The position numbers were made by a program, and so were the translations under genes. Of a stretch of 64,000 bases of DNA, positions 4,853 to 58,880 are shown one piece after another (within the stretch, counting starts at the first letter, position 1; each line of letters begins with the position of its first letter). This DNA is from Hypanus sabinus. Its lineage: Eukaryota. The notes below the pieces were generated by a model. That model was not told the origin of the DNA, did not search any database, and saw only the letters and a list, made by a program, of their open reading frames with translations. The stretch lies in contig NW_026779593.1 in the NCBI RefSeq assembly GCF_030144855.1, positions 1 to 64,000 of the forward strand, read 5' to 3'.

Positions 4853-7589
4853 ATGGATACAGCAAGGAAAATATGCTACCCGGTTATTGCAGCCATCGGC
4901 GTCCCTGGTAAGGCTTCCCAGTTCTAACTGGTGATCGGATCGTGGTATTTTACTTCAACATCTCGCTCGTGATCTGTCCTTCCATTTAATCCATTAATAT
5001 ATGTATTAATCGAGTAACAAATTTATTTGCTAATACCCACTGTAATGAGTGCTGTAAACATTTGTATTTGGCAATAGGTCGAATGATCTGTCTTTACCCG
5101 TTGCTGAACGACCAAGAATTGTGTGTGCAGGTCGCATTTAAGTCGATTTATCGCTACAGGTTTCATCCTTAAATCATCAAGATCTGCTAGACGATTACCA
5201 TGGACACTCGGGTTTGTTGTCACCGCCNNNNNNNNNNNNNNNNNNNNNNNNNNNNNNNNNNNNNNNNNNNNNNNNNNNNNNNNNNNNNNNNNNNNNNNNN
5301 NNNNNNNNNNNNNNNNNNNNNNNNNNNNNNNNNNNNNNNNNNNNNNNNNNNNNNNNNNNNNNNNNNNNNNNNNNNNNNNNNNNNNNNNNNNNNNNCCAGG
5401 TCAGCTGCCATTTGTGGCAGATCTTCCCAACCGTTTGTTTGAATGTCGTGGATCCTTCCCATTAACCGAGAAGTCGAGGAACCCCTAATGGAGAAATCTC
5501 CTCTGTCGAGGGAAATAATGGACGGTTAAGGCCGAGATATTTCATCAGAACGAGATACTATGCTTGGAGAGGACATCATAACAAGATGGGAGAAGAAGCT
5601 CAATAATAAAGACTCTGGCAAAACACGTGAACCCATCTATCTGTTTCAATAGATGCTACCTGGACGAATTGCTTTGAATGTTTCTCTGTTGTCCAGTGTT
5701 GTGTGGGTGTAGTGGCGGCATCTCCTGCTGATAATTTGACGTCTTTACACGATGTATTAACAATTCATAATTTCACGGAATAACCTACTACAGTCTTTTC
5801 TCTTATTGCTGACAACCATTGTTGGAGCTACTTCTTTCATAATCTCTCTCACAATTAGCTGGCTTTACATCAGGCGATCGCACCCCTTTTGTATGACGTT
5901 CACCCCAACTATTAGCGGACGGATGCGTAGACCGCAGTTCGGGAACTCCAAGTTCACTCATTCAGCAGCATTCATTTCTGTATCATATCGAAAGCGAATT
6001 TTGTCTCGTGCAATACATTGGCGAAATTCAAAAACGTGTCTGATTATACGCCGTTTATTTATATTTTCATGCGAGACGTTTGCTTAAACTGAACAAACAG
6101 TTCGGAGTCAACTCATCTTGTGCCCGTGTAGTCCTGCATAGGACAGACGGATACAGTTGATGGGTTTCTCCGTCCAACACCGAAGACAGCTTAGTCCGTT
6201 CCGTAGGTGTTCCCTGTCCTGCTGCGTTCCACCAGCCCCGTGTTATCTGGGTGTAGTGGCGGCAGCTCATGTTAATTATTTTTTCTTTCCACGATGTTCT
6301 AACGCTTTCGATTTTTTTCTGAATTACCCTTGAAAGTCAACTTTGAAAGTCGGACCTTGAGAAGCATGGAGTACATCAGCAAAAGTCCACACTCGGTTCC
6401 ACTCCTCTAACAGATTGTCCAAAAGAGGTACGCATACATTGCGTTACGCATACATTCCACAGGAACAATTTTAATCAAGACCTGGTTTGAAGTGAAATTT
6501 CAAACGGTGACATTGTCCGATATGTGTCGGATAGCGATGGCGACTTAGATTAAATATATTATGACAAGATGTCCTGTCGTGTTAGAATTAACTTTTAAAA
6601 TGCAGTTTGATTGTATGTTATGCATGTCAAAAAAAAAAAAAAAAGAAATCTTCTCGTCATTTTTTCTTTCTTTGTTTCTAGTTAACCTAGTGGCGATCGT
6701 GATACTCAGCCGAGGAAAGTGTGGTCTCTCCAAAGGGATCACTCGGTATCTGGTGGCGATGGCCGTGGCCGATCTTGCGGTGGTGATCATCGAAGTCGGG
6801 TACTTCCAGATCGTTGATGCGTACCGAGCGTACTGGCTGTTGCTTCCCCCTCCGTTCTGTTTCGTCCACTTCGCCTTCTGTTACGTGTCTTTAGATTGTT
6901 CCGTGTGGCTGACTGTGGCGTTCACTTTCGATCGGTTTGTGGCCATTTGCTGGTCTAAGATTCAGGCAAAGTACTGTAACCCAAGAATTGCCGGAGGGGT
7001 TATTGGCACAATATGTGTCGTGTTCTGTTTAAAGAACGTCCCTTATTACTTCCTGCATCAAGAGGCTGCAATTAGTACTTCGGGAACGAAATGGAAGACG
7101 TGCCAATCCAAGGGATTGCTTCTCCTGGATCCAGATTTTGAGTGGTTTTCCTGGGTGGATCGTCTGTTAAATCCGCTGCTTCCTTTCTTCCTCATTTTGA
7201 TCCTCAACGTCCTGACCGTCAGACAGATCCTGGCCTCCAGCCGAGTCCGCAGGGGACTCCGGGGACAGAGAACTGGCGAGAAGCAGCAGGATCCGGAGAT
7301 GAAGAGCCGCAGACAGTCCATCGTTCTGCTCTTCACCCTGTCGGCGAGTTTCCTCATCTGCTGGGCGACAACGACGCTTGTCTTCATTTTGCTCCGGTGC
7401 CTCTACACGGACCTGGAAACGTCCATTCGGCTTTTCATGGCGCAACGGGTGGGCGCTGTGATTCAGCTTTTCAGCTGCTGCACAAACACCTTCATTTACG
7501 GCGTGACCCAGACCAAATTCAGGGAGCAGCTAAAGACTACGGCGCTCTATCCGGTTCATATTCTTTGTAGCATGGGGAGGCAGTGTTAA
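4853..7589 (+). CDS. GPR139-like class A GPCR, gene A1 (2 exons: 4853-4907, 6682-7589; 320 aa)
   Basis: Exon 1 reads MDTARKICYPVIAAIGVP and ends G|GTAAG (phase 1). The acceptor is a polypyrimidine tract plus TAG at 6679-6681, and exon 2 continues VNLVAIVILSRGKCGLSK. The product has seven hydrophobic segments with AxADL (TM2), SVWLTVAFTFDRFVAIC (TM3), PYY (TM4), CW (TM6), NTFIY (TM7) and KFR (helix 8). These motifs resemble the GPR139/GPR142 family, but this is not a one-to-one orthologue. Confidence 0.92.
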
Positions 7590-10353: not shown

Positions 10354-10388
10354 TCTCTCTCTCTCTCTACCTCCCTCCCTCTCTCTCT

Positions 10389-10438
<50 letters not shown>
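10354..10438. repeat. (CT)n/(CA)n microsatellite
   Basis: Directly visible. The paralogous site at 36050-36177 is N. Confidence 0.95.
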
Positions 10439-10439
<1 letters not shown>

Positions 10440-11129
10440 GGAGAATCTGCTGTCACACACTCAACACTGAAGATCAGAGATAGTGAAAGAGTGAGTCAAA
10501 GCAATGCTGGAGATATTGGGAATTTGACAAGAAAGGATGGTGAATTAGGGAAACAAATTAGGGATGTTGGAAAAACAGGTGGACGGGTCAAGCGGAGAGG
10601 AAACTGGGCGAAGAGCCTGGTTAATGGCCTGGTTGAGTCGCTGGGCGATGTGAAACTTTGCTTCTGGGTGTGAGGTAGATGAATTCGGATTGATAAGCAA
10701 GGGGATGGGGAGCAGGTTATATAAAATCGAAGAATTTGCTGTTAGTTTCCGCGGGCTGTAAACGACATAGGTAGAACCGGAAATACTATTCCTCTGGTTA
10801 ACGTTTGCTCTCTTCATTATAGTGTTATTGTGTCAATTGGAAATAAATTCTATATGAATGGAAAATGAGGAGTCTATGGGGCTATGGTGGACAGGGTGCT
10901 GATGCTCAAAATCGAGTTCCTCGTCTCCACTTGGAAGTATCTTTCTCTGCCAGACACCTTCTGGACCGTAGCGCATATCAGCTGTAATACAGCGGGGACG
11001 CAGCAAGAACAGTTTGTCAGACTGTTGCTTGCTTGTTAATAAAGCTTTCTTTTCAATAAAGGACGCGTTGCCCTTAGCGTTACACCATCAAAGCGCCAGC
11101 GATCAATTCGTTCTGCTCGTTGAAGAATA

Positions 11130-11481
11130 TTGGACGGTCTCTCCGCCACCATAGTCTGTATTTTTATCAATTATGCTATTGGTTGCACTGTTGTATCTAT
11201 GTTGTTTTGTGCAGGTCTTGTAGATTTAGTTTTTGGTCTTGTTTGTCTGGTGGCTTTGGAGCTCCTTTCCGGGGTGCGCGCTAAGACGCTAGTGCAATAT
11301 TAATATGCAACAGCCTCTCCAGATTCTGGATTGGGGATTGCCAAACGTTATGTAGATTTTCTAGTTAGTCTGATTGGTCATATGCTTTTGTGATATCATT
11401 CTGGAGGAACGTTCTCTCATTTTTTTAACTGCATTGTATTTGTGGTTTCTAAATGACAATAAACTGGATCTGAATCTGAAT
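11130..11481 (+). mobile_element. 3' end of a non-LTR retroelement with an (AATCTG)n-type tail (duplicate at about 36850-37202)
   Basis: Ends ...aaatgacaataaactggatctgaatctgaa, i.e. AATAAA followed by a short tandem tail. The 5' boundary is approximate. Confidence 0.5.
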
Positions 11482-12159
11482 AATAAATAAAGTAAGAATA
11501 TTGAACNNNNNNNNNNNNNNNNNNNNNNNNNNNNNNNNNNNNNNNNNNNNNNNNNNNNNNNNNNNNNNNNNNNNNNNNNNNNNNNNNNNNNNNNNNNNNN
11601 NNNNNNNNNNNNNNNNNNNNNNNNNNNNNNNNNNNNNNNNNNNNNNNNNNNNNNNNNNNNNNNNNNNNNNNNNNNNNNNNNNNNNNNNNNNNATAAGAAA
11701 ACTGTGCTGACGCAACGGGAGCGTTTCTGCGCAGGTGCGACAAAGAGCTTGAAAAGGAAAAGTTTTTCGACAGGAGTCGTTGACTGGGGTACTGTGCAGA
11801 CGCAACTGGCGTTCCCGCACAGGTCGAGAAAAATTTTCAACTGCAAAACCAGTTATCATATAAGAGAGATAACGCCCTGCGGTGAGGTTAACGTGGGAGA
11901 GAATAGGGTGGGTGTAATTTTGAATACAGTTGTGGGAGATTGGGAGAGGTAAACGTAGATGGAAGGATAGGTAAGTGAGGGTATGGATTGGGAACAATGG
12001 TTGACTTATCATCCCCGCGCTACGTACTGCTCCCAAGGAGAGGTTCTGACCCTGTGCAGAGCTCCGTCCCCAAAGCTTTTTGCCAAGGAGGGGTCCCGGC
12101 TGTGTTCCTGTTCTCCCAAGACCAAAGCTCTGAGTCCCAGTTCTCCAACTCTTCCAACA

Positions 12160-12450
12160 CTTAGAATCGATAGTTTGATTTATAAAGACTAATGTACCAA
12201 AAGTTTTCTTTACGACCCTATCTATCTGTGACGCCACTTTTAGGGGATTATGTATTTGTATCCCCAGATCTCTCTGCTCTTCAGCACTCCTGAAAGTCCT
12301 ATCATTTACCTTGTACGTTCTACCTTTGTTTGTCCTTCGAAAGTGCAATACCTCAGACTTTTCAACATTAAAGTCCATCTGCCATTTCTCAGCCCAATTT
12401 TCCAGGTGGTCTAAATCCTTCTGCAAGCTTTGGAAACCTTCCTCACTTTC
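12160..12450 (-). mobile_element. CR1 LINE RT fragment
   Basis: Translates as LQKDLDHLENWAEKWQMDFNVEKSEVLHF...EQRDLGIQIHNPLKVASQIDRVVKK. Confidence 0.88.
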
Positions 12451-18360: not shown

Positions 18361-20851
18361 ATGGATACAGCAAGGAAAATATGCTACCCGGTTATTGCAG
18401 CCATCGGCGTCCCTGGTAAGGCTTCCAAGTTCTAACTGGTGATCAGATCGTGATATTTTATTTCAACATCTCGCTCGTCATTTTATCTTCCATTTAATCC
18501 AGTGATATATGTATTAATCGATTGATAATTTTATTTCCTCATACCCACTGTAAAGTCTCCCGTAAACATTGGGATTTTGCAATATGTCAAATGAATCGTC
18601 TTTAGCCTTCTCCGAACGTCGAATAATTCTGTGTGCAGGTCTCATTGAAGTCTATTTCTCGCGGCATGTTTCATCCGTAAATCATCACGATCTGCTGGAC
18701 AATTATCATGGACACTCGGGTTTGTTGCGAACGAAAACCTGAGAGATTCTCCAAACGCTGGAAAGCGAAAAGGACAATCGCAGAAAAATGATTGATGAAT
18801 TCACCAAGTCAGGTGCCAATTATGGCAGGTCTTCCCAAACCGTTTAATTTAAGGTCACGGACCCTTCCATTAACCGAGAAGTCCATTTACCCCTGATTGG
18901 GAAATTTCCCTTACAGATGGAAATAGACGACGTTTAAGGCAGAGATATTTCATGGGCACAAGAAACGATGTGTGGAGGGCACGTAATAATAGGATGGGAG
19001 AAGAGGCTCAATAATGAAGTCTCTGGCCGGACACGTCAACCCTTTTATCTGTTTTCATAGATATAACCTGAACGATTTTTTTAATGTTTCTCTGATGTCC
19101 GGTGTTGTGTGGGTGTAGTGGCGGAGTAACCTTTTCTCTGATTGCTCACAGGCATTGTTGGAACTGCTTCGTTCATAATCTCTCTGACAATTAGGTATCT
19201 TTACGTTTACATCGGGGATCGCGCCCCGAATGTTTGACATTCACCTCAACTATCAAAGGAGGGATCCATGGACCGCAGATCGGGAACGCCAAGTTCACTC
19301 GTTGAGCAACATTCATTGCTATATCGTATCAAAAGCGAATTTTGTCTCGTGGAATGCATTAGCGAAATTCAAATACGTGGCTGATAAAAGCCTTCTATTT
19401 ATATTTCCATTCCTGGCATGTGCTTAACCAAACTGAAGGAACAGTTCAGAGTCAACTCAGCTTGTGCTTGCGTATCCTGCATGGCACAGACGGATAAAGT
19501 TGATGGATTTCCTCGTCCAACACCGTAGACAGATTAGTCCTCTCCGGAGGTGCTGCCTGTCCTGCTGAGTTCCTCCCGCGTTGTTTCTGTATTACCCTGA
19601 AAGGTGAAATTTGATGTTCGGACCTGGAAAAGGATGGAATACATCAGCAAAAGCCCACAGTCGGTTTCATTCCTCTGACAGGATGTCCAGACGTGGGACA
19701 GATCTCCACATTACGCGAACATCTGAGACGAAAATATTAATCAAGTTCATGTCTGCCGTGATATTGCAAACAGTGACATTTCCCCTGTGGGTGTCGCATA
19801 GCGATGGCGATTTCGATTATAAATGTTATGACAAGATGTCTAGCAGTGCTGGAATTATATTTTAAAATGCAGTTTGGTTGCATGTTATGCATGTCAGAAC
19901 TCCTCCTCTTTTTTTAATTTATTTCTGACAGTTAACCTAGTGGCGATCGTGGTACTCAGCCGAGGAAAGTGTGGTCTCTCCAAAGGGATCACTCGGTATC
20001 TGGTGGCGATGGCCGTGGCCGATCTTGCGGTGGTGATTATCGAAGTCGGGTACTTCCAGATCGTCGAGGCGTACCGAGCGTACTGGCTGTTGCTTCCGTC
20101 TCCGTTCTGTTTAGTCCACTACGTCTTGTGTTACGTGGCATTAGATTGTTCCGTGTGGCTGACTGTGGCGTTCACTTTCGATCGGTTTGTAGCCATTTGC
20201 TGGTTTAAGATTCAGGCAAAGTACTGTAACCCAAGAATTGCCGGATTGGTTATTGGCACAACGTGCGTCTTGTTATGCTTAAAGAACGTCCCTTATTACT
20301 TCCTGCATCGGGAGGCTGGAATTAGACTTTTTGACGGGAAATGGTGGACGTGCCCGTCCAAGGGACTTCTTCACATGGAGCCTGGGTTCGAGTTGTTTTA
20401 CTGGATGGACCGTCTGTTAAATCCGCTACTTCCTTTCTTTCTCATTTTGTTACTGAACATCCTGACCGTCAGACGGATCCTGGCCTCCAGCCGAGTCCGC
20501 AGGGGACTCCGGGGACAGAGAACCGGCGAAAAGCAGCAGGATCCGGAGATGAAGAGCCGGAGACAGTCCATCGTTCTGCTCTTCACCCTGTCGGCGAGTT
20601 TCCTCCTGTGCTGGTCGACAACCACGCTTGTCTTCATTTTGCTGCGGTGCCTCTACACGGACCTGGAAACGTCCATTCGGCTTTTCATGGCGCAACGGGC
20701 GGGAGCTGTGATTCAGCTTTTTAGCTGCTGCACAAACACCTTCATATACGGCGTGACCCAATCGAAATTCAGAGAGCAGCTGACGATTGCCGCGCTCTAT
20801 CCCGTTCGTATCCTTGTTTGGTTGGGAAGGCAGAGTTTAACTCGCAGTTAA
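18361..20851 (+). CDS. GPR139-like class A GPCR, gene B1 (2 exons: 18361-18415, 19932-20851; 324 aa)
   Basis: Exon 1 is the same 55 nt as in A1, with a GTAAG donor at 18416 and a CAG acceptor at 19929-19931. The 7TM frame is open to TAA at 20849-20851. ECL2 is distinct (REAGIRLFDGKWWTCPSK). Confidence 0.92.
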
Positions 20852-24079: not shown

Positions 24080-26179
24080 GCAAGGGTGGGTGATGTAGCA
24101 GGATCCTCTTTTGAGTCAGAATGATTGGAAGTCAGGAACAGAATGGGAGCAGTTACTCTACGGAGGTATTCTATAGGAGCCCTGGTAGCAGCAGAGATAC
24201 CGAGGAGCAGATTAGGAGGCAGATTTTGGAAAAGTGCAAAAATAACAGGGTTGTTCACATGGGTGACTTTAACTTCCCTAATATTGGTTGGAACTTGATT
24301 AGTTCCAAGGATTTAGATGAGGCAGAGTTAGTCAAGTGTGTGCAGGAAGGATTCCTGTCACAGTATGCTGACAAGCCGACCAAGGGGAATGTCATACTAG
24401 ATCTAGTATTAGGTAACAAACCGGGTCAGGTCACAGATCTGTCAGTGGGTGACCACCTGGGGGTCAGTGATCACCGCTCCCTGACCTTTAGGATTATCAT
24501 GGAAAAGAATAGAATCAGAGAAGACAGGATTTTTAGTTTTAATTGGGAAGGGCAAATTATGAGGCTATAAGGCTAGAACTTGCGGGTGTGAATTGGGATG
24601 ATATTTCTGCCGGGAAATGTACTATGGACAAGTGGTCGATGTTTAGGGATATCTTGCAGGATGTTCGGAATGAATTTGTCCCGGTGAGGAAGATAAAGAA
24701 TGGTAGGGTGACAAGTGAAGTGGAAAATCCAGTCAGGTGGAAGAAGGCAGCATACATGAAGTTTCGGAAGCAAGGATCAGATGGGTCTACTGAGGAATAT
24801 AGGTTAGCAAGAAAGGAGTTGAAGAAGGGACTGAGAAGAGCAAAAAAGGGACATGAGAAGGCCTTGGCGAATAGGGTAAAGGAAAACCCCAGGGCATTCT
24901 TCAATTATGTGAAGAGCAAAAGGAGGACAGGAATGACGGTAGGACCGATTAGAGATAAAAGTGGGAAGATGTGCATGGACGCTGTGGAAGTGTGCGAGGT
25001 CCTCAATGAATACTTCTCTTCGGTATTCACCACTGAGGGGGATCTTGATGACGGTGAGGACAGTATGAGTGAGGTTGATGTTCTGGAGAATGTTGATATT
25101 AAGGGAGAGGAGGTGTTGGAGTTGTTAAAATAAATTGGGACGGATAAGTCCCCGGTGCCTGACGGAATATTCCCCAGGCTGCTCCAAGAGGCAAGGGAAG
25201 AGATTGCTGCACCTCTTGTTAGTATCTTCAGTCCTCTTTGTCCAGGGGAATGGTACCGGAGGATTGGAGGGAGGCGAATGTTATCCCCTTGCTCATAAAA
25301 GGCAATAGTGATAGTCCAGGTAATTATAGACCAATGAGCCTTACTTCTGTGGTGGGAAAGCTGTTGGAATATATTCTTAGAGATAGGATCTATCGGGATT
25401 TCGAGAATCATGGTCTGATCAGGGACAGTCAGCATGGCTTTGTGAAGGGCAGATAGTGCCTAACAAGCCTGATAGATTTCTTTGAGGAGGTGACAGGCAT
25501 ATAGATGAGTGTAATGCAGTGGATGTAATCTACATGGATTTTAGTAAGGCATTTGACAAGGTTCCACAAGGTAGGCTTATTCAGAAAGTCAGAAGGCATG
25601 GGATCCAGGGAGGTTTGGCAAAGTGGATTCAGAATTGGCTTGCCTGCAGAAGGCAGAGTGGCATGGTGGTGGAGTACTTTCAGATCCGAGGGTTGTGACT
25701 AGTGGTATCCCACAAGGATCTGTTCTGGGAACTCTACGTTTTGTGATTTTTATTGTCGACCAGTATGTGTCTGAGTTGACAAGTTTACAGACGACACAAA
25801 GTTTGGTGGTGTTGTTATAGTGTAGAAGATTGTCGAAGATTGCAGAGAGACATCGATAGGATGCAGAAATGGGCTGAGAAGTGGCAGATGGAGTTCAACC
25901 CGGAGAAGTATGAGGTGGTACACTTTGGAAGGACAAACTCCAAGACAGAGTACAAATTAAATGGCAGGATTCCTGGTAGTGTGGAGGAGCAGTGGGTTTT
26001 GATGGTACATGTCCACTGAAAGTTGCCTCACAGGTAGATAGGAGTGTTAAGAAAGCTTATGGGGTGTTAGTTTTCATAAGTCGAGGGATAACGTTTAAGA
26101 GACGCGATGTAATGATGCAGCTCCATAAAACTATAGTTTGGCCACACTTGGAGTACTGTCTCCAGTTCTGGTCGCCTCA
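24080..26179 (+). mobile_element. CR1-type LINE ORF2 remnant (endonuclease + reverse transcriptase), truncated and inactive
   Basis: Endonuclease motifs are GDFNFPNI, LDLVL and SDH. RT motifs are NYRPMSLTSVVGKLLE, QHGFVKGR, YMDFSKAFDKVP, GIPQGSVLG, WAEKWQMEFNPEK and PHLEYCLQFWSP. There are multiple stops and frameshifts. Confidence 0.95.
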
Positions 26180-29202: not shown

Positions 29203-29315
29203 TGAAGTGCAATTGCTCCAGAAAGGATGCGCCCGCATGTTTCAGCATGTTTTTTAATTATCATTTATGATTTTTTTTGTGCTGCCTGTTTGTGCCGGGA
29301 TAAATCACAATACAA

Positions 29316-30084: not shown

Positions 30085-30503
30085 TTTGGGCGTGGCGGGG
30101 GGGGGGGGCGGTGTAGACACCATGATCAGTATAACGGCTTTATTTATGCAACAAAATAAATCTTAGTTTTTGCACGGGGGATCCAGTTCCCGTAAGACAA
30201 ACAAAGCAGAATTATTTGTGAGGTTATGATAATTAACACCATATGGAACGCAGCTGGTTTCATCATCGGCAAACCGAATCTGCTATATAAGATCCAACAT
30301 GCAGTCTCTTTGCTTGACTTGTGAATGAACCATCAAGGCGCACAGAAACCGTAGAAGTGTTGCGACTGAAGGACGCACGTTTTATTTCTCGTGCCCTTAC
30401 TCTTATGGATTAAATATTTTGTGAATACTTTACAGAGTTATCAGCCGGATATTTCTTGCGTCTCTGGATAAATATTATTCCAAGCGGAGAACACAAATAC
30501 TGC

Positions 30504-37967: not shown

Positions 37968-38258
37968 CTTAGAATCGATAGTTTGATTTATAAAGACTAA
38001 TGTACCAAAAGTTTTCTTTACGACCCTATCTATCTGTGACGCCACTTTTAGGGGATTATGTATTTGTATCCCCAGATCTCTCTGCTCTTCTGCACTCCTG
38101 AAAGTCCTATCATTTACCTTGTACGTTCTACCTTTGTTTGTCCTTCGAAAGTGCAATACCTCAGACTTTTCAACATTAAAGTCCATCTGCCATTTCTCAG
38201 CCCAATTTTCCAGGTGGTCTAAATCCTTCTGCAAGCTTTGGAAACCTTCCTCACTGTC
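37968..38258 (-). mobile_element. CR1 LINE RT fragment (copy)
   Basis: Copy of 12160-12450. Confidence 0.88.
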
Positions 38259-44011: not shown

Positions 44012-46562
44012 ATGGATACAGCAAGGAAAATATGCTACCCGGTTATTGCAGCCATCGGCGTCCCTGGTAAGGCTTCCAAGTTCTAACTGGTGATCAGATC
44101 GTGATATTTTATTTCAACATCTCGCTCGTCATTTTATCTTCCATTTAATCCAGTGATATATGTATTAATCGATTGATAATTTTATTTCCTCATACCCACT
44201 GTAAAGTCTCCCGTAAACATTGGGATTTTGCAATATGTCAAATGAATCGTCTTTAGCCTTCTCCGAACGTCGAATAATTCTGTGTGCAGGTCTCATTGAA
44301 GTCTATTTCTCGCGGCATGTTTCATCCGTAAATCATCACGATCTGCTGGACAATTATCATGGACACTCGGGTTTGTTGCGAACGAAAACCTGAGAGATTC
44401 TCCAAACGCTGGAAAGCGAAAAGGACAATCGCAGAAAAATGATTGATGAATTCACCAAGTCAGGTGCCAATTATGGCAGGTCTTCCAAAACCGTTTAATT
44501 TAAGGTCACGGACCCTTCCATTAACCGAGAAGTCCATTTACCCCTGATTGGGAAATTTCCCTTACAGATGGAAATAGACGACGTTTAAGGCAGAGATATT
44601 TCATGGGCACAAGAAACGATGTGTGGAGGGCACGTAATAATAGGATGGGAGAAGAGGCTCAATAATGAAGTCTCTGGCCGGACACGTCAACCCTTTTATC
44701 TGTTTTCATAGATATAACCTGAACGATTTTTTTAATGTTTCTCTGATGTCCGGTGTTGTGTGGGTGCAGTGGCGGCATCTCACTCTAACTAGTTTCCGTC
44801 TCTCCACGATGTTTCAATGCTTTCATATTTCACGGAGTAACCTTTTCTCTGATTGCTCACAGGCATTGTTGGAACTGCTTCGTTCATAATCTCTCTGACA
44901 ATTAGGTATCTTTACGTTTACATCGGGGATCGCGCCCCGAATGTTTGACATTCACCTCAACTATCAAAGGAGGGATCCATGGACCGCAGATCGGGAACGC
45001 CAAGTTCACTCGTTGAGCAACATTCATTGCTATATCGTATCAAAAGCGAATTTTGTCTCGTGGAATGCATTAGCGAAATTCAAATACGTGGCTGATAAAA
45101 GCCTTCTATTTATATTTCCATTCCTGGCATGTGCTTAACCAAACTGAAGGAACAGTTCAGAGTCAACTCAGCTTGTGCTTGCGTATCCTGCATGGCACAG
45201 ACGGATAAAGTTGATGGATTTCCTCGTCCAACACCGTAGACAGATTAGTCCTCTCCGGAGGTGCTGCCTGTCCTGCTGAGTTCCTCCCGCGTTGTTTCTG
45301 TATTACCCTGAAAGGTGAAATTTGATGTTCGGACCTGGAAAAGGATGGAATACATCAGCAAAAGCCCACAGTCGGTTTCATTCCTCTGACAGGATGTCCA
45401 GACGTGGGACAGATCTCCACATTACGCGAACATCTGAGACGAAAATATTAATCAAGTTCATGTCTGCCGTGATATTGCAAACAGTGACATTTCCCCTGTG
45501 GGTGTCGCATAGCGATGGCGATTTCGATTATAAATGTTATGACAAGATGTCTAGCAGTGCTGGAATTATATTTTAAAATGCAGTTTGGTTGCATGTTATG
45601 CATGTCAGAACTCCTCCTCTTTTTTTAATTTATTTCTGACAGTTAACCTAGTGGCGATCGTGGTACTCAGCCGAGGAAAGTGTGGTCTCTCCAAAGGCAT
45701 CACTCGGTATCTGGTGGCGATGGCCGTGGCCGATCTTGCGGTGGTGATTATCGAAGTCGGGTACTTTCAGATCGTCGAGGCGTACCGAGCGTACTGGCTG
45801 TTGCTTCCGTCTCCGTTCTGTTTAGTCCACTTCGCCTTCTGTTACGTGTCTTTAGATTGTTCCGTGTGGCTGACTGTGGCGTTCACTTTCGATCGCTTTG
45901 TGGCCATTTGCTGGTTTAAGATTCAGGCAAAGTACTGTAACCCAAGAATTGCCGGATTGGTTATTGGCACAACGTGCGTCTTGTTATGCTTAAAGAACGT
46001 CCCTTATTACTTCCTGCATCGGGAGGCTGGAATTAGACTTTTTGACGGGAAATGGTGGACGTGCCCGTCCAAGGGACTTCTTCACATGGAGCCTGGGTTC
46101 GAGTTGTTTTACTGGATGGACCGTCTGTTAAATCCGCTACTTCCTTTCTTTCTCATTTTGTTACTGAACATCCTGACCGTCAGACGGATCCTGGCCTCCA
46201 GCCGAGTCCGCAGGGGACTCCGGGGACAGAGAACCGGCGAAAAGCAGCAGGATCCGGAGATGAAGAGCCGGAGACAGTCCATCGTTCTGCTCTTCACCCT
46301 GTCGGCGAGTTTCCTCCTGTGCTGGTCGACAACCACGCTTGTCTTCATTTTGCTGCGGTGCCTCTACACGGACCTGGAAACGTCCATTCGGCTTTTCATG
46401 GCGCAACGGGCGGGAGCTGTGATTCAGCTTTTTAGCTGCTGCACAAACACCTTCATATACGGCGTGACCCAATCCAAATTCAGAGAGCAGCTGACGATTG
46501 CCGCGCTCTATCCCGTTCGTATCCTTGTTTGGTTGGGAAGGCAGAGTTTAACTCGCAGTTAA
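44012..46562 (+). CDS. GPR139-like class A GPCR, gene B2 (2 exons: 44012-44066, 45643-46562; 324 aa)
   Basis: Copy of B1 with intact splice sites and frame. TM3 carries the A-type HFAFCYVSL instead of HYVLCYVAL. Confidence 0.92.
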
Positions 46563-49789: not shown

Positions 49790-51889
49790 GCAAGGGTGGG
49801 TGATGTAGCAGGATCCTCTTTTGAGTCAGAATGATTGGAAGTCAGGAACAGAATGGGAGCAGTTACTCTACGGAGGTATTCTATAGGAGCCCTGGTAGCA
49901 GCAGAGATACCGAGGAGCAGATTAGGAGGCAGATTTTGGAAAAGTGCAAAAATAACAGGGTTGTTCACATGGGTGACTTTAACTTCCCTAATATTGGTTG
50001 GAACTTGATTAGTTCCAAGGATTTAGATGAGGCAGAGTTAGTCAAGTGTGTGCAGGAAGGATTCCTGTCACAGTATGCTGACAAGCCGACCAAGGGGAAT
50101 GCCATACTAGATCTAGTATTAGGTAACAAACCGGGTCAGGTCACAGATCTGTCAGTGGGTGACCACCTGGGGGTCAGTGATCACCGCTCCCTGACCTTTA
50201 GGATTATCATGGAAAAGAATAGAATCAGAGAAGACAGGATTTTTAGTTTTAATTGGGAAGGGCAAATTATGAGGCTATAAGGCTAGAACTTGCGGGTGTG
50301 AATTGGGATGATATTTCTGCCGGGAAATGTACTATGGACAAGTGGTCGATGTTTAGGGATATCTTGCAGGATGTTCGGAATGAATTTGTCCCGGTGAGGA
50401 AGATAAAGAATGGTAGGGTGACAAGTGAAGTGGAAAATCCAGTCAGGTGGAAGAAGGCAGCATACATGAAGTTTCGGAAGCAAGGATCAGATGGGTCTAC
50501 TGAGGAATATAGGTTAGCAAGAAAGGAGTTGAAGAAGGGACTGAGAAGAGCAAAAAAGGGACATGAGAAGGCCTTGGCGAATAGGGTAAAGGAAAACCCC
50601 AGGGCATTCTTCAATTATGTGAAGAGCAAAAGGAGGACAGGAATGACGGTAGGACCGATTAGAGATAAAAGTGGGAAGATGTGCATGGACGCTGTGGAAG
50701 TGTGCGAGGTCCTCAATGAATACTTCTCTTCGGTATTCACCACTGAGGGGGATCTTGATGACGGTGAGGACAGTATGAGTGAGGTTGATGTTCTGGAGAA
50801 TGTTGATATTAAGGGAGAGGAGGTGTTGGAGTTGTTAAAATAAATTGGGACGGATAAGTCCCCGGTGCCTGACGGAATATTCCCCAGGCTGCTCCAAGAG
50901 GCAAGGGAAGAGATTGCTGCACCTCTTGTTAGTATCTTCAGTCCTCTTTGTCCAGGGGAATGGTACCGGAGGATTGGAGGGAGGCGAATGTTATCCCCTT
51001 GCTCATAAAAGGCAGTAGTGATAGTCCAGGTAATTATAGACCAATGAGCCTTACTTCTGTGGTGGGAAAGCTGTTGGAATATATTCTTAGAGATAGGATC
51101 TATCGGGATTTCGAGAATCATGGTCTGATCAGGGACAGTCAGCATGGCTTTGTGAAGGGCAGATAGTGCCTAACAAGCCTGATAGATTTCTTTGAGGAGG
51201 TGACAGGCATATAGATGAGTGTAATGCAGTGGATGTAATCTACATGGATTTTAGTAAGGCATTTGACAAGGTTCCACAAGGTAGGCTTATTCAGAAAGTC
51301 AGAAGGCATGGGATCCAGGGAGGTTTGGCAAAGTGGATTCAGAATTGGCTTGCCTGCAGAAGGCAGAGTGGCATGGTGGTGGAGTACTTTCAGATCCGAG
51401 GGTTGTGACTAGTGGTATCCCACAAGGATCTGTTCTGGGAACTCTACGTTTTGTGATTTTTATTGTCGACCAGTATGTGTCTGAGTTGGCAAGTTTACAG
51501 ACGACACAAAGTTTGGTGGTGTTGTTATAGTGTAGAAGATTGTCGAGGATTGCAGAGAGACATCGATAGGATGCAGAAATGGGCTGAGAAGTGGCAGATG
51601 GAGTTCAACCCGGAGAAGTATGAGGTGGTACACTTTGGAAGGACAAACTCCAAGACAGAGTACAAATTAAATGGCAGGATTCCTGGTAGTGTGGAGGAGC
51701 AGTGGGTTTTGATGGTACATGTCCACTGAAAGTTGCCTCACAGGTAGATAGGAGAGTTAAGAAAGCTTATGGGGTGTTAGTTTTCATAAGTCGAGGGATA
51801 ACGTTTAAGAGACGCGATGTAATGATGCAGCTCCATAAAACTATAGTTTGGCCACACTTGGAGTACTGTCTCCAGTTCTGGTCGCCTCA
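49790..51889 (+). mobile_element. CR1-type LINE ORF2 remnant, duplicate copy
   Basis: Copy of 24080-26179 at offset 25710. Confidence 0.95.
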
Positions 51890-54242
51890 CTCGGTGTAAT
51901 TCAAAATCTGTAATCAGGAAGGGCTTGTGCAGCGACTAAGGAGAGAGATGAGAGACAGATATCAACTATCAGGATATACAGTCACATGAGGAAGGGCTAC
52001 ATTGAACTTCACAATCTGGAGAAAACCAGAAAAGGAAGAGATACTCACACAAAATGTGAAGGAACTCAGGAGGACTGAGTGAATGAGGTATTCCTCTGTG
52101 GGTAACACATTCAGCTGAATAATTGCTGAAACATTTTGAACATAGAACATAGAATAGTACAGTACATTACAGGCCCTTCGGCCCACAATACAGTGCCGAC
52201 CCTCAAACCCTGCCTCCCATATAACCCCCCATCATTGATACAGAGACGTCTACATGTATTTTTCCCAAGCGGAGATACCGTATTATTGGCCGTCGGAAAG
52301 AGGAGGCACCCAACGTTGGCGCCATCTCCATGAAGGAAGTTGGAATGGATAGCCTTGTAATGATTTGATCGGTCACAAGACATTGTTACCAGGGTGAGTT
52401 TAATAATAAATACCGACTGAGCGAGGACAAACGAAGATCTACCGTTCTAAGACGTCGTAACAGTTGAAAAATATTTAAGGTGAACTTTAGAGTTTTCTCA
52501 ATCATTCTGGTGACGCATTGGTTAGGAGGTGAAGTGGTCACATTGACATAATTGGCCACGTGTGCTCCTTGGGTTGCAGGGGCCTATTATTCTGTTAGAT
52601 TTCTAAATAAAACTAAAATGAACTTTTCCTTCTATTCTTTAATACTTAACTGTTTCTTAATTATGTCACAGTCTGTTGTTATACAGTTCTTTCTTGAACA
52701 ACTACCCTTATAAATTGTTCAGAATCCCATTATACCTTCATTGAGGGCCGAATAAACCCACCGACGCTCCCTCTGTTCTAGAACTAACAATTTTTCATCA
52801 GACATCGCACCTTGACCTATTCTCCAAGAAACTGCAAATACAACATCCCAGTGCATTGTTTCAACAATCAAAAATTCGGCAATGTACCGTTTATTCTATC
52901 TAATTGCACCCTCCTCCGCAACACACATACACAGCAGCCCCACAACCCGCGTTTTCTGTGCCGCAGCAATGAACAATAAAATGAGACCTGTTTCCATTCC
53001 ATTGCGCTATTAGCGATGGGTTTAGTGAATTTAATTCCAAATCGTGTCAAGAGGTGGCGCATTTGCAAATAGAATAGCGGATAAGTTGTGCAAGTGGCGA
53101 CACTGCCTCTGATCAATATTGCACTCACGACATGCTACGTTTTATACCGCTTTCCACGTCAAAATGGGCTCACCAAAGACGGAATTACTAATTACCTAGT
53201 TCACATTTAAAATTCAGCGCCGCTGTGAGAATTCCCCAAACCAGCAGCAGGAATGCTCTCAGTCCGCATCTGGAACATGTTCACCTGGAGAAGTTGCATC
53301 CTTTACGTCACACTGAACGCGGAAATTTCCTATAAAGATTCTCAGCTTAAACTCTACCACACTACGAAAGTGAAGCACCGCGGACTGAGAAAATATGCGG
53401 CCGCATAGCACGTGACAGGAGATTTGGTCCTGCAATAGGACCCAAAGTAGGATTTCACTCTGCTCTCCATACTCACCATCTCCACACCCGAAAGAAAAAT
53501 ACAACTCTTAGTTAAAAGTGAATTTATTCTCAAAGTACGCGCTATGCATATGTCACCAAATACTATCCAATATCCTCTTCCTTGTGTTTGTTGACAGTGG
53601 AAGAAAAACAGCTGAATAAATGAAAAACTGTAGACATATTCCAACTGACAACCAATACCGATGTTAAGAAGTAGACAAACTGTGCAAATTATTAAAGAAT
53701 CAATAATAATAAATACAGATTTCTTGCTCTTTCACCCTCACTTCTTTCTCTCCCCTCCTATTCTGGCGCTCTTCGTTGACCGTCTCTATCACGAGCACTT
53801 GCCCCGCTCTTTACGCCAATTAACCGGCATTCTACTACCCTCTCGCTCACTTTCTCCTACCGTTGCCGGTTCCCTTTGGTCTTCGCCCACTGCTGCCTCT
53901 CGTCCAATCTCTCGCCCCTGGTGTCTGTATGTTCATGTCTCGCTCCCTCTTCTCTCCAGCACCACAAATTATTTCGTTCTGCACTACAATCGCCGGAGAG
54001 GTGTCAAGTCAGATTATATGCACATCCTATGCACATTGCTCTCTTTCTACTTCACTTCGAAAACAGTGCATCACAGCAACAGGCACTTCGCCACTCAATG
54101 ATATTCTGCACCCATCAGGTTAGTAATAAAATGTTCAATTAAACTATCATTTTCTGCCTCCAGAATGTCCCTACCCTTCTACTAATTTCACATTGCTATT
54201 GCATGGAAACGTGTCTTAGAATTTGGCTACAATACGTGTCGT

Positions 54243-54912
54243 TTTCTGGCCATTTGCTGGACAAACATTCAGACAGAGTATTGTAATCCAAGAATTGCCG
54301 GATGGGTTATTGGCACAATATGCGTCGTGTTCTGTTTAGTGAACGTCCTTTATTATTCCTGCATTGAGAGGCTGGAATTAGTATTTGGGAAGGGAAATGG
54401 AGGACGTGCAGGTCCAAGAGCTCACTTCACCAGGATCCACTTTTTGACTGGTTTTCCTGAGTGGACCGTCCGATATATCCACTGCGTCCTTTCTTTCTCA
54501 TTTTGTTACTGAACATCCTGACCGTCAGACGGATCCTGGCTCCAGCCGAGTCCGCAGGGGACTCCGGGGACATTGAACTGGCGAGAAGCAGCAGGATCCG
54601 GAGAAGAAGAGCCGGAGACAGTCCATCGTTCTGCTCTTCACCCTGTCGGCGAGTTTCCTCCTGTGCTGGGGGACAACCACGCTTGTCTTCATTTTGCTGC
54701 GGTGCCTCTACTCTGACCTGGAAACGTCCGTTCGTCTTTTCATGGCGCAACGGGCGGGAGCTGAGATTCAGCTTTTCAGCTGCTGCATAAACACCTTCAT
54801 TTACGGCGTAACCCAAACCAAATTCAGAGAGCAGCTGAAGATCACGGCTCTCAATCCCGCTCATATGCTTGTTAGCTTGGGAAGACAGCGTTTAACGCGG
54901 ACTTACCCGTGA
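54243..54912 (+). pseudogene. GPR139-like pseudogene psi3
   Basis: Same lesions as psi1. Diagnostic variants (ETSVRL, KITALNPAH) are shared with psi4. Confidence 0.9.
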
Positions 54913-55025
54913 TGAAGTGCGATTGTTCCAGAAAGGATGCGCCCGCATGTTTCAGCATGTTTTTTAATTATCATTTATGATTTTTTTTGTGCTGCCTGTT
55001 TGTGCCGGGATAAATCACAATACAA

Positions 55026-55794
55026 AGAAACATGGAAAACCTATACGACAATACAGGCCCTTCGAAACACAAATTTGTGCCGAACATGTTACTACCTTAG
55101 AAATACAGCCTTACCTATAGACCTCTATTATACTAAGCTCCATGTACCTATCCAAAGGCCACTTATCGTATCGGCCTCCACCACCGTTGCCGGCAGGCCA
55201 TTGCTCGCACTCACCACTCTCTGAGTAAATACGTACCCCTGACAGGTCCTCTGTACCTACTCCCCATCAACTAAAACGTGTGTCCTTCTGTGTTTCACCA
55301 TTTCATCACTGGGAAAAGCTTTCTACTATCCACACGATGCATGCCTCCCATCATCTTGTACATCTCTATCAGGTCACCTCTCATCCTGCGTCACTCCATG
55401 GAGATAAGGCAGAGTTACTCAACCTATTCTCATAGGGCATGGTCCTCACTCCAGGCAACATCCTTGTAAATATCATCTGCACTCTTTCTATGGCTTCCAC
55501 ATCCTTCCTCTAGTGAGGCAGTAGATCTGAGCAAAGAACTGCAAGTGGGGTCTGACCATGGTCCTATAGAGCTGCATCATTACCTCTCGGCTCTTAAACT
55601 CAATCCAACGATTGATGAAGGCCAATACACCGTACGTCTTCTTAATCACTGAGTCAACCTGCGTAGCTGCTTTGAGTGTACCTGGACCCCAAGATCCCTC
55701 TGACCCTCCACACCGTCAAGAGTCTTACCATTAATACTATATTCTACAGTAATATTTGACCTAACAGAATGAACCACTTTACACTTATCTGGGT
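55026..55794 (-). mobile_element. CR1 LINE 3' fragment (copy)
   Basis: Copy of 3665-4433. Confidence 0.8.
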
Positions 55795-56261
55795 TTTGGG
55801 CGTGGCGGGGGGGGTGGCGGTGTAGACACCATGATCAGTATAACGGCTTTATTTATGCAACAAAATAAATCTTAGTTTTTGCACGGGGGATCCAGTTCCC
55901 GTAAGACAAACAAAGCAGAATTATTTGTGAGGTTATGATAATTAACACCATATGGAACGCAGCTGGTTTCATCATCGGCAAACCGAATCTGCTATATAAG
56001 ATCCAACATGCAGTCTCTTTGCTTGACTTGTGAATGAACCATCAAGGCGCACAGAAACCGTAGAAGTGTTGCGACTGAAGGACGCACGTTTTATTTCTGT
56101 GCTATTCGTCAATCAAGTTTCATTGTGAAACTTACTACTTCATTTCTCGTGCCCTTACTCTTATGGATTAGATATTTTGTGAATACTTTACAGAGTTATC
56201 AGCCGGATATTTCTTGCGTCTCTGGATAAATATTATTCCAAGCGGAGAACACAAATACAGC

Positions 56262-58880
56262 ATGGATACAACAAGGAGAATATGCTACCCGGTTATTGCA
56301 GCCATCGGCGTCCCTGGTAAGGCTTCCCAGTTCTAACTGGTGATCGGATCGTGGTATTTTACTTCAACATCTCGCTCGTGATCTGTCCTTCCATTTAATC
56401 CATTAATATATGTATTAATCGAGTAACAAATTTATTTGCTAATACCCACTGTAATGAGTGCTGTAAACATTTGTATTTGGCAAAAGGTCGAATGATCTGT
56501 CTTTACCCGTTGCTGAACGTCCAAGAATTGTGTGTGCAGGTCGCATTTAAGTCGATTTATCGCTACAGGTTTCATCCTTAAATCATCAAGATCTGCTAGA
56601 CGATTACCATGGACACTCGGGTTTGTTGTCACCGCCAACTCCAGAAAACGAAAATAGCGCACACACACACACACACACACACAGAAAAGCGACTGAATAA
56701 TTCACCAGGTCAGCTGCCATTTATGGCAGATCTTCCCAACCGTTTGCTTGAATGTCGTGGATCCTTCCCATTAACCGAGAAGTCGAGGAACCCCTAATGG
56801 AGAAATCTCCTCTGTCGAGGGAAATAATGGACGGTTAAGGCCGAGATATTTCATCAGAACGAGAAACTATGCTTGGAGAGGACATCATAACAAGATGGGA
56901 GAAGAAGCTCAATAATAAAGACTCTGGCAAAACACGTGAACCCATCTATCTGTTTCAATAGATGCTACCTGGACGAATTGTTTTGAATGTTTCTCTGTTG
57001 TCCAGTGTTGTGTGGGTGTAGTGGCGGCATCTCCTGCTGATAATTTGACGTCTTTACACTATGTATTAACAATTTATAATTTCACGGAATAACCTACTAC
57101 AGTCTTTTCTCTTATTGCTGACAACCATTGTTGGAGCTACTTCTTTCATAATCTCTCTCACAATTAGCTGACTTTACATCAGGCGATCGCACCCCTTTTG
57201 TATGACGTTCACCCCAACTATTAACGGAGGGATGCGTAGACCGCAGTTCGGGAACTCCAAGTTCACTCATTCAGCAGCATTCATTTCTGTATCATATCGA
57301 AAGCGAATTTTGTCTCGTGCAATACATTGGCGAAATTCAAAAACGTGTCTGATTATACGCCGTTTATTTATATTTTCATGCGAGACGTGTGCTTAAACTG
57401 AACAAACAGTTCGGAGTCAACTCATCTTGTGCCCGTGTAGTCCTGCATAGGACAGACGGATACAGTTGATGGGTTTCCCCGTCCAACACCGAAGACAGCT
57501 TAGTCTGTTCCGTAGGTGTTCCCTGTCCTGCTTCGTTCCACCAGCCCCGTGTTATCTGGGTGTAGTGGCGGCAGCTCATGCTAATTAGTTTTTCTTTCCA
57601 CGATGTCCTAACGCTTTCGATTTTTTTCTGAATTACCCTTGAAAGTCAACTTTGAAAGTCGGACCTTGAGAAGCATGGAGTACATCAGCAAAAGTCCACA
57701 CTCGGTTCCACTCCTCTAACAGATTGTCCAAAAGAGGTACGCATACATTGCGTTACGCATACATTCCGCAGGAACAATTTTAATCAAGACCTGGTTTGAA
57801 GTGAAATTTCAAACGCTGACATTGTCCGATATGTGTCGGATAGCGATGGCGACTTAGATTAAAAATATTATGACAAGATGTACTGTCGTGTTAGAATTAA
57901 CTTTTAAAATGCAGTTTGATTGTATGTTATGCATGTCAGAAATCTTCTCGTCATTTTTTCTTTCTTTGTTTCTAGTTAACCTAGTGGCGATCGTGATACT
58001 CAGCCGAGGAAAGTGTGGTCTCTCCAAAGGGATCACTCGGTATCTGGTGGCGATGGCTGTGGCCGATCTAATGGTGGTTGTCATCGAGGTCGCGTTCTAC
58101 CAGATCGTTGAAACATACCGAGTATACTGGCTTCGGCCATCACTTCCGTTCTGTTTAGTCCACTACGTCTTGTGTTACGTGTCTTTAGATTGTTCCGTGT
58201 GGCTGACTGTGGCGTTCACTTTCGATCGCTTTGTGGCCATTTGCTGGTCGAAGATTCAGAACAAGTACTGTACGCCAAGAATTGCAGGACGGATCATTGG
58301 CACAATATGCGTTTCGTTCTGTTTAAAGAACGTGCCTTATTACTTCCTGCACAAGGAACGCGCAAGCCTGTTTTGGAATCAATGCGATCAGAAATCGGCT
58401 CTCCACACAGATCCGCAGTTTGAGTGGTTTTACTGGTTAGACCGTCTTTTGAATCCGCTGTTTCCGTTCTTCCTCATTTTGTTCCTCAACATTCTGACAG
58501 TCAGACTGATCCTGGCATCCAGCCGAGTCCGTAGGGGGCTCAGGGGACAGAGAAAAAGCGAGAATCAGCAGGACCCGGAAATGAGGAGTAGGAGACAGTC
58601 CATTATACTGCTCTTCACATTGTCGGCGAGTTTCCTCCTGTGCTGGGCGACAACCACCCTGGTCTTCATTTTCCTGCGGAGCCTCTACACGGACCTGGAA
58701 ACGTCTATCCGACTGTGGATGACGCAGCGAGCGGGGACAGTGATTCAGCTTTTCAGCTGCTGCACAAACACCTTCATTTACAGTGTGACCCAGACCAAAT
58801 TCAGGGAGCAGCTAAAGATTGTCGCGCTCAGCCCTATTAATTTGCTTGTTAAGATGGTGAGGCGGTGCTTAGCGCACTGA
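56262..58880 (+). CDS. GPR139-like class A GPCR, gene C (2 exons: 56262-56316, 57976-58880; 319 aa)
   Basis: Exon 1 reads MDTTRRICYPVIAAIGVP with a GTAAG donor, and the TAG acceptor is at 57973-57975. The 7TM frame is intact with DRF and NTFIY, and ECL2 is shorter and divergent (KERASLFWNQCDQK). Confidence 0.92.
56660..56683. repeat. (CA)n microsatellite in the intron of gene C
   Basis: Directly visible. The paralogous sites at 5228-5395 and 30882-31127 are N. Confidence 0.95.

Follow-up and report, generated by a model that had tools for sequence, protein, structure and literature searches.

Probable mosaic evolution in a tandem array of distantly GPR139-like receptor genes of the Atlantic stingray: a divergent second extracellular loop on a conserved receptor core

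Introduction

That class A receptor families vary in an outer loop, keep their inner face constant and exchange sequence with neighbouring genes by conversion is a textbook pattern, known from the chemokine receptors and from chicken FFAR2. The present work deals with a set of such receptor genes in the Atlantic stingray, Hypanus sabinus, lying on the first 64,000 nucleotides of contig NW_026779593.1 of assembly GCF_030144855.1 (hereafter, the window), and with the part of the protein in which their types differ most, the second extracellular loop (ECL2). In the CC chemokine receptors, 19 of 20 positively selected codons are extracellular and gene conversion takes place between neighbours (PMC2880985). 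The window resembles that cluster (CCR2/CCR5, CCR1/CCR3) in its tandem class A paralogues and its conversion; its candidate selected codons are likewise mostly extracellular. Chemokine receptors have features of their own, namely known protein ligands, long ligand-binding N-termini and an immune role, whereas the N-terminus of the window receptors comprises only about six residues. In chicken FFAR2 (GPR43), extensive conversion keeps the paralogues alike, and an elevated ratio of nonsynonymous to synonymous rates (dN/dS, omega) near the ligand groove has been proposed to resist conversion (PMC4453067). Both loci are lineage-specific tandem class A expansions with gene conversion; however, the key ligand-binding residues of FFAR2 lie in the homogenised part, with its selected sites by the groove, while the putatively selected sites of the window fall in the ECL2 hairpin, and the expansion of the window family is much older and wider, embracing sharks, skates and rays.

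Odorant (OR), trace amine-associated (TAAR), vomeronasal (V1R) and bitter taste (T2R) receptors form large lineage-specific tandem families with many pseudogenes, a variable ligand side and a conserved intracellular face. The window family shares with these chemosensory repertoires a large lineage-specific expansion, the presence of pseudogenes and a more variable outer side (entropy of 1.80 bits, against 0.73 bits on the inner side, p 6e-23, in a wider family set of 83 sequences at 45-50% identity). The main variation of OR and TAAR receptors lies in pocket residues of transmembrane helices (TM) 3, 5 and 6, whereas the window clade has a conserved pocket and confines its variation to ECL2.

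By sequence, the closest solved structure is that of GPR139, a human orphan class A receptor (7VUG and related entries; phmmer E 6.6e-10), which ranked third in a Foldseek search with a model of window copy A1 and after which NCBI names the window genes. The two agree in a DRY-type motif, in N5.58 and W6.48 and in the absence of P7.50 (NTFIY in the window, NFFLY in GPR139). Generic numbers follow our own helix anchors on A1 (N20=1.50, D49=2.50, C78=3.25, R103=3.50, C159=45.50, P186=5.50, W246=6.48, N287=7.49), those of TM4 and TM5 being the least certain, with a possible offset of up to 3 positions. On the other side, identity is only about 20-25%, and GPR139 carries Lys at 3.25 and no Cys in ECL2, while both Cys (C78 and C159) are invariant in the window family. 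The ligand contacts of GPR139 are E3.32, F3.33, H5.43, R6.51, N7.38 and Trp residues of ECL2 (PMC8807744). According to our anchors, E3.32, H5.43, R6.51 and N7.38 correspond to C85, R179, T249 and G276 in the window family, and only W6.48 and an aromatic residue at 3.33 (here Y86) are shared. Furthermore, GPR139 is presented in one review as a highly conserved gene (PMC12208981), while the window family has thousands of members across elasmobranchs. Orthology to GPR139 was rejected on the basis of the identity of about 20% to 7VUG chain R, the different ligand contacts and the expanded family.

The reading that we consider reasonably probable is that the window covers a portion of a tandem array whose genes belong to a class A receptor family expanded in elasmobranchs and distantly GPR139-like, and that these genes have evolved as mosaics, with purifying selection and gene conversion acting on the core and the inner face, a fast ECL2 in which a few sites are probably under diversifying selection, and a conserved pocket.

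Divergence between receptor types

Nine receptor-like places were found in the window by tblastn with copy C, namely A1, B1, A2, B2, C and four 5'-truncated pseudogenes. As A2 and B2 are 99% copies of A1 and B1, within a segmental duplication 98.5-99.5% identical, only three receptor types (A, B and C) are present. The translation of copy C is 100% identical to an NCBI protein named "probable G-protein coupled receptor 139". NCBI models and sequence show two-exon genes with canonical splice sites: an exon 1 of 18 codons, a GT donor, a phase-1 intron of about 1.5-1.8 kb and an AG acceptor, after which exon 2 begins at VNLVAIV. The two-exon open reading frames (ORFs) of A1, B1, B2 and C are intact. 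The coding features, all on the forward strand, are as follows (ICL, intracellular loop).

4853-4906 (+): exon 1 of A1 (MDTARKICYPVIAAIGVP), with GT donor and phase-1 intron, in agreement with NCBI model P0007
6681-7589 (+): exon 2 of A1, residues 19-320 and stop, intact; AlphaFold2 model with a predicted local distance difference test score (pLDDT) of 84
7056-7130 (+): ECL2 of A1, residues 144-168, a beta-hairpin plus linker and hypervariable module, from DSSP on the AlphaFold2 model and from omega and site models
18361-18414 (+): exon 1 of B1
19931-20851 (+): exon 2 of B1, intact, 324-residue protein
20306-20380 (+): ECL2 of B1
30504-30557 (+): exon 1 of A2
32395-33302 (+): exon 2 of A2, frameshifted by a 1-bp deletion near 32434-32435 (coding sequence (CDS) position 95, in ICL1)
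44012-44065 (+): exon 1 of B2
45642-46562 (+): exon 2 of B2, intact
56262-56315 (+): exon 1 of C (MDTTRRICYPVIAAIGVP), in agreement with NCBI model P0001
57975-58880 (+): exon 2 of C, intact, 319-residue protein, its first ~83 nt identical to A1 and the remainder C-type
58350-58412 (+): ECL2 of C, four codons shorter than in A and B

The initial annotation, made from sequence alone, had described a sharp difference in ECL2 between the types, and the counts bear this out. A1 and B1 differ at 12 of the 25 residues of the loop (A1 residues 144-168) and at 32 of the 277 in the rest of the protein; the corresponding figures are 18 and 51 for A1 and C, and 19 and 51 for B1 and C, so that 12-19 of 25 residues stand against 12-18% elsewhere (Fisher p 3e-5 to 6e-9 across the three pairs). 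Every string that it had quoted is found at its place, the A-type ECL2 at 7059, the B-type at 20309 and 46020, the C-type at 58353 and the pseudogene type at 3013 and 28664; at the top of TM3, HFAFCYVS is present at 6867, 32580 and 45828, HYVLCYVA only at 20117 (B1) and HYVLCYVS at 58161. The near-invariance described for three inner segments was likewise confirmed, with no differences between types in ICL1, in the DRF motif or where ICL3 begins; the ICL1 string is present in A1, B1, B2 and C, and the DRF block and ICL3 start in all five copies. ICL3 differs at 0-3 of 10 residues between type pairs.

The extracellular half as a whole is more divergent than the intracellular half (p 0.002 to 3e-6), an excess that becomes weak once ECL2 is removed (p 0.1, 0.004 and 0.04). 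However, the proposed split into a divergent outside and a conserved inside holds for ECL2 against ICL1, DRF and ICL3 and fails at two other places: ECL3 is identical in all type pairs, and the intracellular C-tail varies at 5-9 of 14 residues. Because of these two segments the divergence is not simply one of outside versus inside; it is a matter of ECL2, with ECL1 and the C-tail next, and not of the whole outer face. The variation at the top of TM3 is small, involving 1-5 residues, and in B2 it represents a conversion patch.

Selection by region and by site

Selection was analysed on 16 intact exon-2 coding sequences, comprising four from the window, two others from H. sabinus, nine from Hemitrygon akajei, a member of the same family (Dasyatidae), and a Leucoraja outgroup. 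Our own implementation of the Goldman-Yang codon likelihood was used with F3x4 frequencies and an IQ-TREE topology, giving under M0 a log likelihood of -6870.1 (IQ-TREE, -6872.1) and a whole-gene omega of 0.415; for regional estimates each region had its own synonymous-rate scale. Omega was 0.07 in ICL1, 0.14 in TM6, 0.20 in ICL2, 0.24 in TM3, 0.29 in TM2, 0.31 in TM5, 0.33 in TM7, 0.37 in TM4, 0.39 in both ICL3 and helix 8 (H8), 0.81 in the C-tail, 1.06 in ECL1 and 1.07 in ECL2. Constraint is indeed stronger on the G-protein side, as had been suggested, with an omega of 0.25 for the intracellular and 0.57 for the extracellular part (likelihood-ratio test statistic (LRT) 39.6, p 3e-10), and of 0.26 and 0.43, respectively, without ECL2 (LRT 12.9).

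The same values contradict the expectation that dN/dS in ECL2 and TM3 would exceed the neutral value. ECL2 is not different from 1 (p 0.74), with a local synonymous rate 1.7x the gene average, and positive selection at the level of the region was found neither for ECL2 (1.07) nor for TM3 (0.24). At the top of TM3, one subclade gave an omega of 1.6 on very few changes (p 0.39). These results have to be set against the possible, though doubtful, explanation that constraint has only been relaxed, ECL2 and the C-tail being tolerant loops that drift neutrally after duplication, with no selection for a new ligand specificity. Consistent with it, neither ECL1 nor the C-tail differs from 1 either, the omega of ECL2 is 0.94 and 0.88 in two subclades, the deep pocket is invariant, and ECL2 is the part of the A1 model with the lowest confidence (pLDDT 62-71).

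What speaks against drift alone is the heterogeneity among the codons of the loop. Model M2a, which includes a positively selected class, was preferred to M1a over the whole of exon 2 (LRT 93, with 7.7% of sites at omega 3.3) and over residues 132-185 (LRT 36-43). It was also preferred in ECL2 alone, both with its own rate scale (LRT 11.8) and with a region-specific tree (LRT 12.6), with p about 0.002; under the latter, ~45% of the codons have an omega of 2.1 and about one third an omega of about 0.1. ECL2 is not an unconstrained segment, because this last third is strongly conserved. The test was repeated in the two subclades without the ECL2 indel, where M2a again prevailed (A/B-type, LRT 27.6; C-type, LRT 28.2; p about 1e-6). 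Moreover, the type of ECL2 can persist across species, as in A1 and its H. akajei orthologue, which have the same one.

Over the whole exon, the sites with a posterior probability (P) above 0.95 are 114, 147, 150-153, 160, 161, 164, 168 and 274; nine of these 11 belong to ECL2, which has 25 codons (hypergeometric p 2e-9). Both subclades have site 160 in the selected class, a recurrence that also argues against relaxed constraint, and sites 161, 164, 147 and 149 appear in one subclade each. Sites 160 and 161 directly follow the disulfide Cys (positions 45.51 and 45.52). Among G-protein coupled receptors in general, no other ECL2 positions extend into the orthosteric pocket as often. Taken together, the results speak with moderate strength for diversifying selection at some ECL2 codons over a background of relaxed constraint. 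The ligand-side diversification suggested by the initial annotation is favoured by the M2a class and the clustering of sites in ECL2, but not by the regional omega of about 1 or by a weak per-site test, and the method is approximate.

Residue 114 of A1 (ICL2, ~6966-6968), flagged as selected with P 0.995, has the column AATAAIIPSNSSRTTV. It lies in a region of 10 codons with a synonymous rate 3x the gene average and misfits the picture of a variable outside and a conserved inside.

Gene conversion

The synonymous rate is not uniform along exon 2, its scale being 0.68 in residues 19-100, 1.40 in residues 101-168 and 1.05 in residues 169-320 (LRT 28, p 8e-7). For the same sequence pairs, dS is 0.05-0.21 in TM1-TM3 (residues 19-100) and from 0.3 to above 1 in ECL2. 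The topologies of the segments conflict: the 5' tree groups A1 with B1 and B2 (support 92/92), with the clade of A1 and its H. akajei orthologue marginally rejected (approximately unbiased (AU) test, p 0.044), and the 3' tree groups A1 with that orthologue (100/99), with the clade of A1 and B rejected (AU p 0.001), both p-values being somewhat generous in that the groups were named after the trees had been seen. Identical tracts with sharp edges are also apparent. Copy C is chimeric: in exon 1 and the intron its identity to A is 96-100%, and between A1 and C there are zero differences over 6644-6763, a run that enters exon 2 by 83 nt and covers ICL1, after which identity falls to 71-92%. The identity of ICL1 between A and C is not attributable to selection alone, because it lies inside an identical DNA tract that crosses the intron-exon boundary. 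A second example was found in B2.

45832-45851 (+): A-type gene-conversion patch in B2 at the top of TM3 (HFAFCYVS), where five clustered differences between B1 and B2 all match A1 and A2; the tract spans at most CDS 238-308

On the evidence of these sequences, conservation is in part concerted evolution by gene conversion, a component that the initial annotation had overlooked. An explanation in these terms mainly, in which conversion erases differences in the flanks of exon 2 and rarely covers ECL2, which would simply retain the older, true divergence, accommodates the depressed dS of residues 19-100, the rate heterogeneity, the conflicting topologies and the sharp-edged tracts, as well as the identity profile of A1 and B1, which is ~80% in the intron and in ECL2 alike and 90-98% over the exon. 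We nevertheless judge it unlikely. From TM5 to H8, dS is not depressed (0.2-0.55) and omega is still low (0.14-0.33), and because dN is low there at an undepressed dS, purifying selection is also needed. In addition, the intracellular motifs are nearly invariant in 83 members of the family at 45-50% identity from many species, beyond the reach of conversion. Owing to both observations conversion is not the whole explanation, and conservation arising purely from it was rejected, since it holds for the 5' third only. Conversely, conversion tracts extend over ICL1 and TM1-TM3, so that selection must not be taken as the sole cause when neighbouring paralogues are alike.

Ligand pocket and intracellular face

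Within the clade, E56 (2.57), H81 (3.28), D90 (3.37), D178 (5.42), R179 (5.43), W246 (6.48), T250, F253 and Q280 (7.42) do not vary, and the mean entropy of the canonical pocket positions is 0.38 bits, against 0.66 bits for other residues of the outer half of the helices. The suggestion that the variable sites face the binding pocket was not upheld for the helices, since the canonical pocket is almost invariant and the varying helix residues mostly lie elsewhere. Nor does the top of TM3 appear as a site of ligand specificity: the A-type motif differs at 3.26, 3.29, 3.30 and 3.31, of which only 3.29 is on the usual pocket list, and the omega of TM3 is low, as given above. The ligand-side variation is in the ECL2 lid and not in the pocket floor. 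In the wider family of 83 sequences, positions 3.29, 3.32, 7.35 and 7.39 reach 2.9-3.3 bits.

The same 83 sequences hardly vary in ICL1, in DRF, along the stretch RVR.GL.GQ...DPEM.SRR.S or in the TM7-H8 block. This supports, as far as sequence conservation goes, a putative common transducer interface, and it is in this form, as motifs consistent with such an interface, that the proposed shared signalling output stands. At the ICL3-TM6 junction (A1 residues 226-231, ~7302-7319), an S-R-R-Q-S motif is invariant in all copies, pseudogenes included, and R228, R229 and S231 (A1 numbering) are invariant or nearly so in the 83 relatives; we take this motif to fit the textbook basophilic-kinase consensus RRxS.

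Evolutionary model

According to the mosaic model that we favour, the array would grow by segmental duplication and unequal crossing-over and would lose copies to pseudogenisation; signs of such birth and death are the four truncated pseudogenes, the frameshifted A2 and a C-like copy with a stop in ECL2 on another contig. The seven-helix core, the pocket floor and the G-protein face (ICL1, DRF/ICL2, the ICL3-TM6 junction and TM7-H8) would be held by purifying selection, with the 5' third of exon 2 additionally homogenised between neighbouring paralogues by gene conversion. The ECL2 hairpin and linker would escape this homogenisation and evolve at a mean rate that is approximately neutral, about one third of its codons being conserved as a K-W..C..K frame and a subset (147, 149-153, 160, 161, 164 and 168) being probably under diversifying selection. 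Functionally, A, B and C may bind related ligands via the same polar transmembrane pocket, the ECL2 lid may tune the acceptance of a particular ligand, or of a particular portion of a larger one, and all three may signal through the same transducer. The likely specificity site in this very large elasmobranch family would then be the ECL2 hairpin, notably the residues after the disulfide Cys, and not the TM3 pocket. Having one pocket in common and different ECL2 loops, A, B and C constitute a natural set for deorphanising the family.

Several points weigh against this model. The omega of ECL2 does not exceed 1, so that much of its divergence can be explained by relaxed constraint with no further cause. 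A per-site fixed-effects test on a grid, with site-specific synonymous rates, gave p<0.1 at 4 of 25 ECL2 sites and 10 of 277 others, with little power on 16 sequences; it is this weak result that the drift explanation can also claim. The test returned 101 sites under negative selection. The site models were run in our own implementation on the same 16 sequences, with branch lengths fixed up to scale and naive empirical Bayes posteriors. Recombination inflates tests of this kind. The pocket-facing calls rest on generic numbering, our own helix anchors and secondary structure, and A2 and B2 could be assembly duplicates.

It is very improbable that the locus is an artefact or dead, its copies being products of assembly or pseudogenes in decay, on an unplaced scaffold rich in gaps, with no functional meaning. 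In favour of this, the unplaced piece of 88.8 kb has seven N gaps, duplication units 1 and 2 are 99% identical, A2 is frameshifted beside four truncated pseudogenes and RNA support for the genes was not found among the runs examined. Against it, the ORFs of A1, B1, B2 and C are unbroken over both exons and their splice sites are canonical, the whole-gene omega is 0.42 with 101 negatively selected sites, and intact orthologues exist in a second species (A1 versus H. akajei Ha_P0006, omega 0.35).

Receptor family and fold

Pfam PF00001 (7tm_1) matches the receptors at E 1e-22 to 5e-20, above the cut-off. The AlphaFold2 model of A1, built on the 83 relatives, has a mean pLDDT of 84 and a predicted template modelling score (pTM) of 0.82, with seven TM helices and H8. 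Its elements, in A1 residues, are as follows.

2-29: TM1
36-65: TM2
77-108: TM3
119-143: TM4
144-149 and 156-161: strands of the ECL2 hairpin
169-212: TM5
223-258: TM6
259-262: ECL3 (four residues)
263-294: TM7, followed by H8

Foldseek placed the model among peptide-type class A receptors (SSTR1, mu-opioid, GPR139 and NMUR2), with a probability of 1.0 to many. The class A anchors N20, D49, D102-R103-F104 and W246 are invariant or nearly so in the 83 family members, and C78 (3.25) and C159 (45.50), invariant in all of them, suggest the conserved TM3-ECL2 disulfide C78-C159. The prolines P6.50 and P7.50 (of NPxxY) are absent in the window receptors, which have CWATTT (T at 6.50) and NTFIY (T at 7.50), a variant that is tolerated in some class A receptors.

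The family search retrieved 2233 cluster representatives at E<=1e-10, and the best 120 named among them all come from sharks, skates and rays. There are many relatives per species, and the 64-kb window alone holds five genes and four pseudogenes. A literature search of incomplete coverage found no paper on an elasmobranch GPR139-like expansion, and a catshark sensory paper leaves such an expansion unmentioned; a 2019 survey reported GPR139/142-related "GPR210" orphans only in coelacanth, gar and fishes. That this very large family represents an undescribed elasmobranch-wide GPR139-like repertoire of hundreds of genes per genome, chemosensory or environment-facing and perhaps offsetting the very small odorant-receptor repertoire of cartilaginous fishes, is quite unlikely on our estimate; were it true, ECL2 would be the specificity module within a subfamily. 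Family-wide, D3.37 and D5.42 (own numbering) are conserved while the surrounding pocket residues vary.

The C gene was also compared with the contigs of four public runs, which seem to derive from DNA of related species. No contig from these four DNA-like runs contained a spliced joint of exon 1 and exon 2. The summed depth was 270-4660 on exon 2 of C and ~5-80 on the intron, a ratio of 50-300x. Within exon 2, depth was lowest over ECL2, where some contigs skip ~58-70 bases. This pattern fits many paralogues with common conserved blocks and differing ECL2, and points to a very high family copy number in related genomes. Within exon 2 of C (57929-58838), the TM7-H8 and DRF blocks reach depths of 1700-4660, against ~15 on the intron.

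Tandem array and gene models

Self-BLASTN revealed a tandem segmental duplication in the window, with a unit of ~25.7 kb.

1-25650 (+): unit 1 (psi1, A1, B1), 98.5-99.6% identical to 25652-51361 at an offset of ~25.65-25.79 kb
25652-51361 (+): unit 2 (psi2, A2, B2), by self-BLASTN against unit 1
51362-58890 (+): shortened unit 3 (psi3, C), 97.8% identical to 1-5227 and 91% to 5396-7585 by self-BLASTN
60308-64000 (+): start of a further unit (psi4) that runs off the window, 96.8-97.7% identical to 879-4567, 26530-30218 and 52240-55927
2801-3533 (+): psi1, 5'-truncated pseudogene, tblastn pieces in three frames with in-frame stops
28452-29184 (+): psi2, pseudogene (tblastn, translations)
54162-54894 (+): psi3, pseudogene (tblastn, translations)
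62288-62966 (+): psi4, pseudogene (tblastn, translations)

Unit 2 could represent either a genuine second copy in the array or a haplotype copy that was put next to unit 1, and in the identity profile the homology of unit 3 to the A unit stops at the stop codon of C. All four pseudogenes start in the DRF region, span three reading frames and contain in-frame stops. The 1-bp deletion in A2 lies outside any long homopolymer and may be real or an assembly error.

The N runs are all in intron 1 of A1 or A2 or between genes, none of them in a coding exon, and the sequence flanking each gap is collinear with the paralogous units. Two gaps, 5228-5395 (A1) and 30882-31127 (A2), both in intron 1, occupy the same homologous position, and at the matching place of unit 3 the read contigs flagged a skipped repeat (56649-56693); for these reasons the intron-1 gaps probably mark a repeat that is hard to assemble.

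Exon 1 of the true genes comprises only 18 codons, and what the raw ORFs show at their N-termini is therefore intron read-through. At 6629-6643, some 40 nt before the acceptor of exon 2, the A1 intron contains 15 bases that A2, B1 and C lack, and these account for the KKKKK run in the raw A1 ORF. The NCBI model of B2, P0010 (372 residues), departs from the plain ORF near …ALYP and splices to an unrelated tail, while the uninterrupted ORF (45642-46562) ends 17 codons past that point, as in B1; the last exon of P0010 may be an annotation artefact. The C-like paralogue mentioned above, 84% identical to C, is on another H. sabinus contig (L001:2796-3698, minus strand), with a premature stop inside ECL2 (...YWNQ*), and is adjoined by a three-frame pseudogene (L001:5780-6434).

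Fragments of ORFs of LINE-type (long interspersed nuclear element) retrotransposons, one of them reverse-transcriptase-like, lie between the receptor genes and were duplicated together with the 25.7-kb unit.

11449-12426 (-): LINE-type ORF fragment
24543-25133 (+): LINE-type ORF fragment
37138-37968 (-): LINE-type ORF fragment
50253-50843 (+): LINE-type ORF fragment

Finally, a dinucleotide microsatellite at ~10400-10450, between A1 and B1, appears as HTHTHTHT in an ORF translation.

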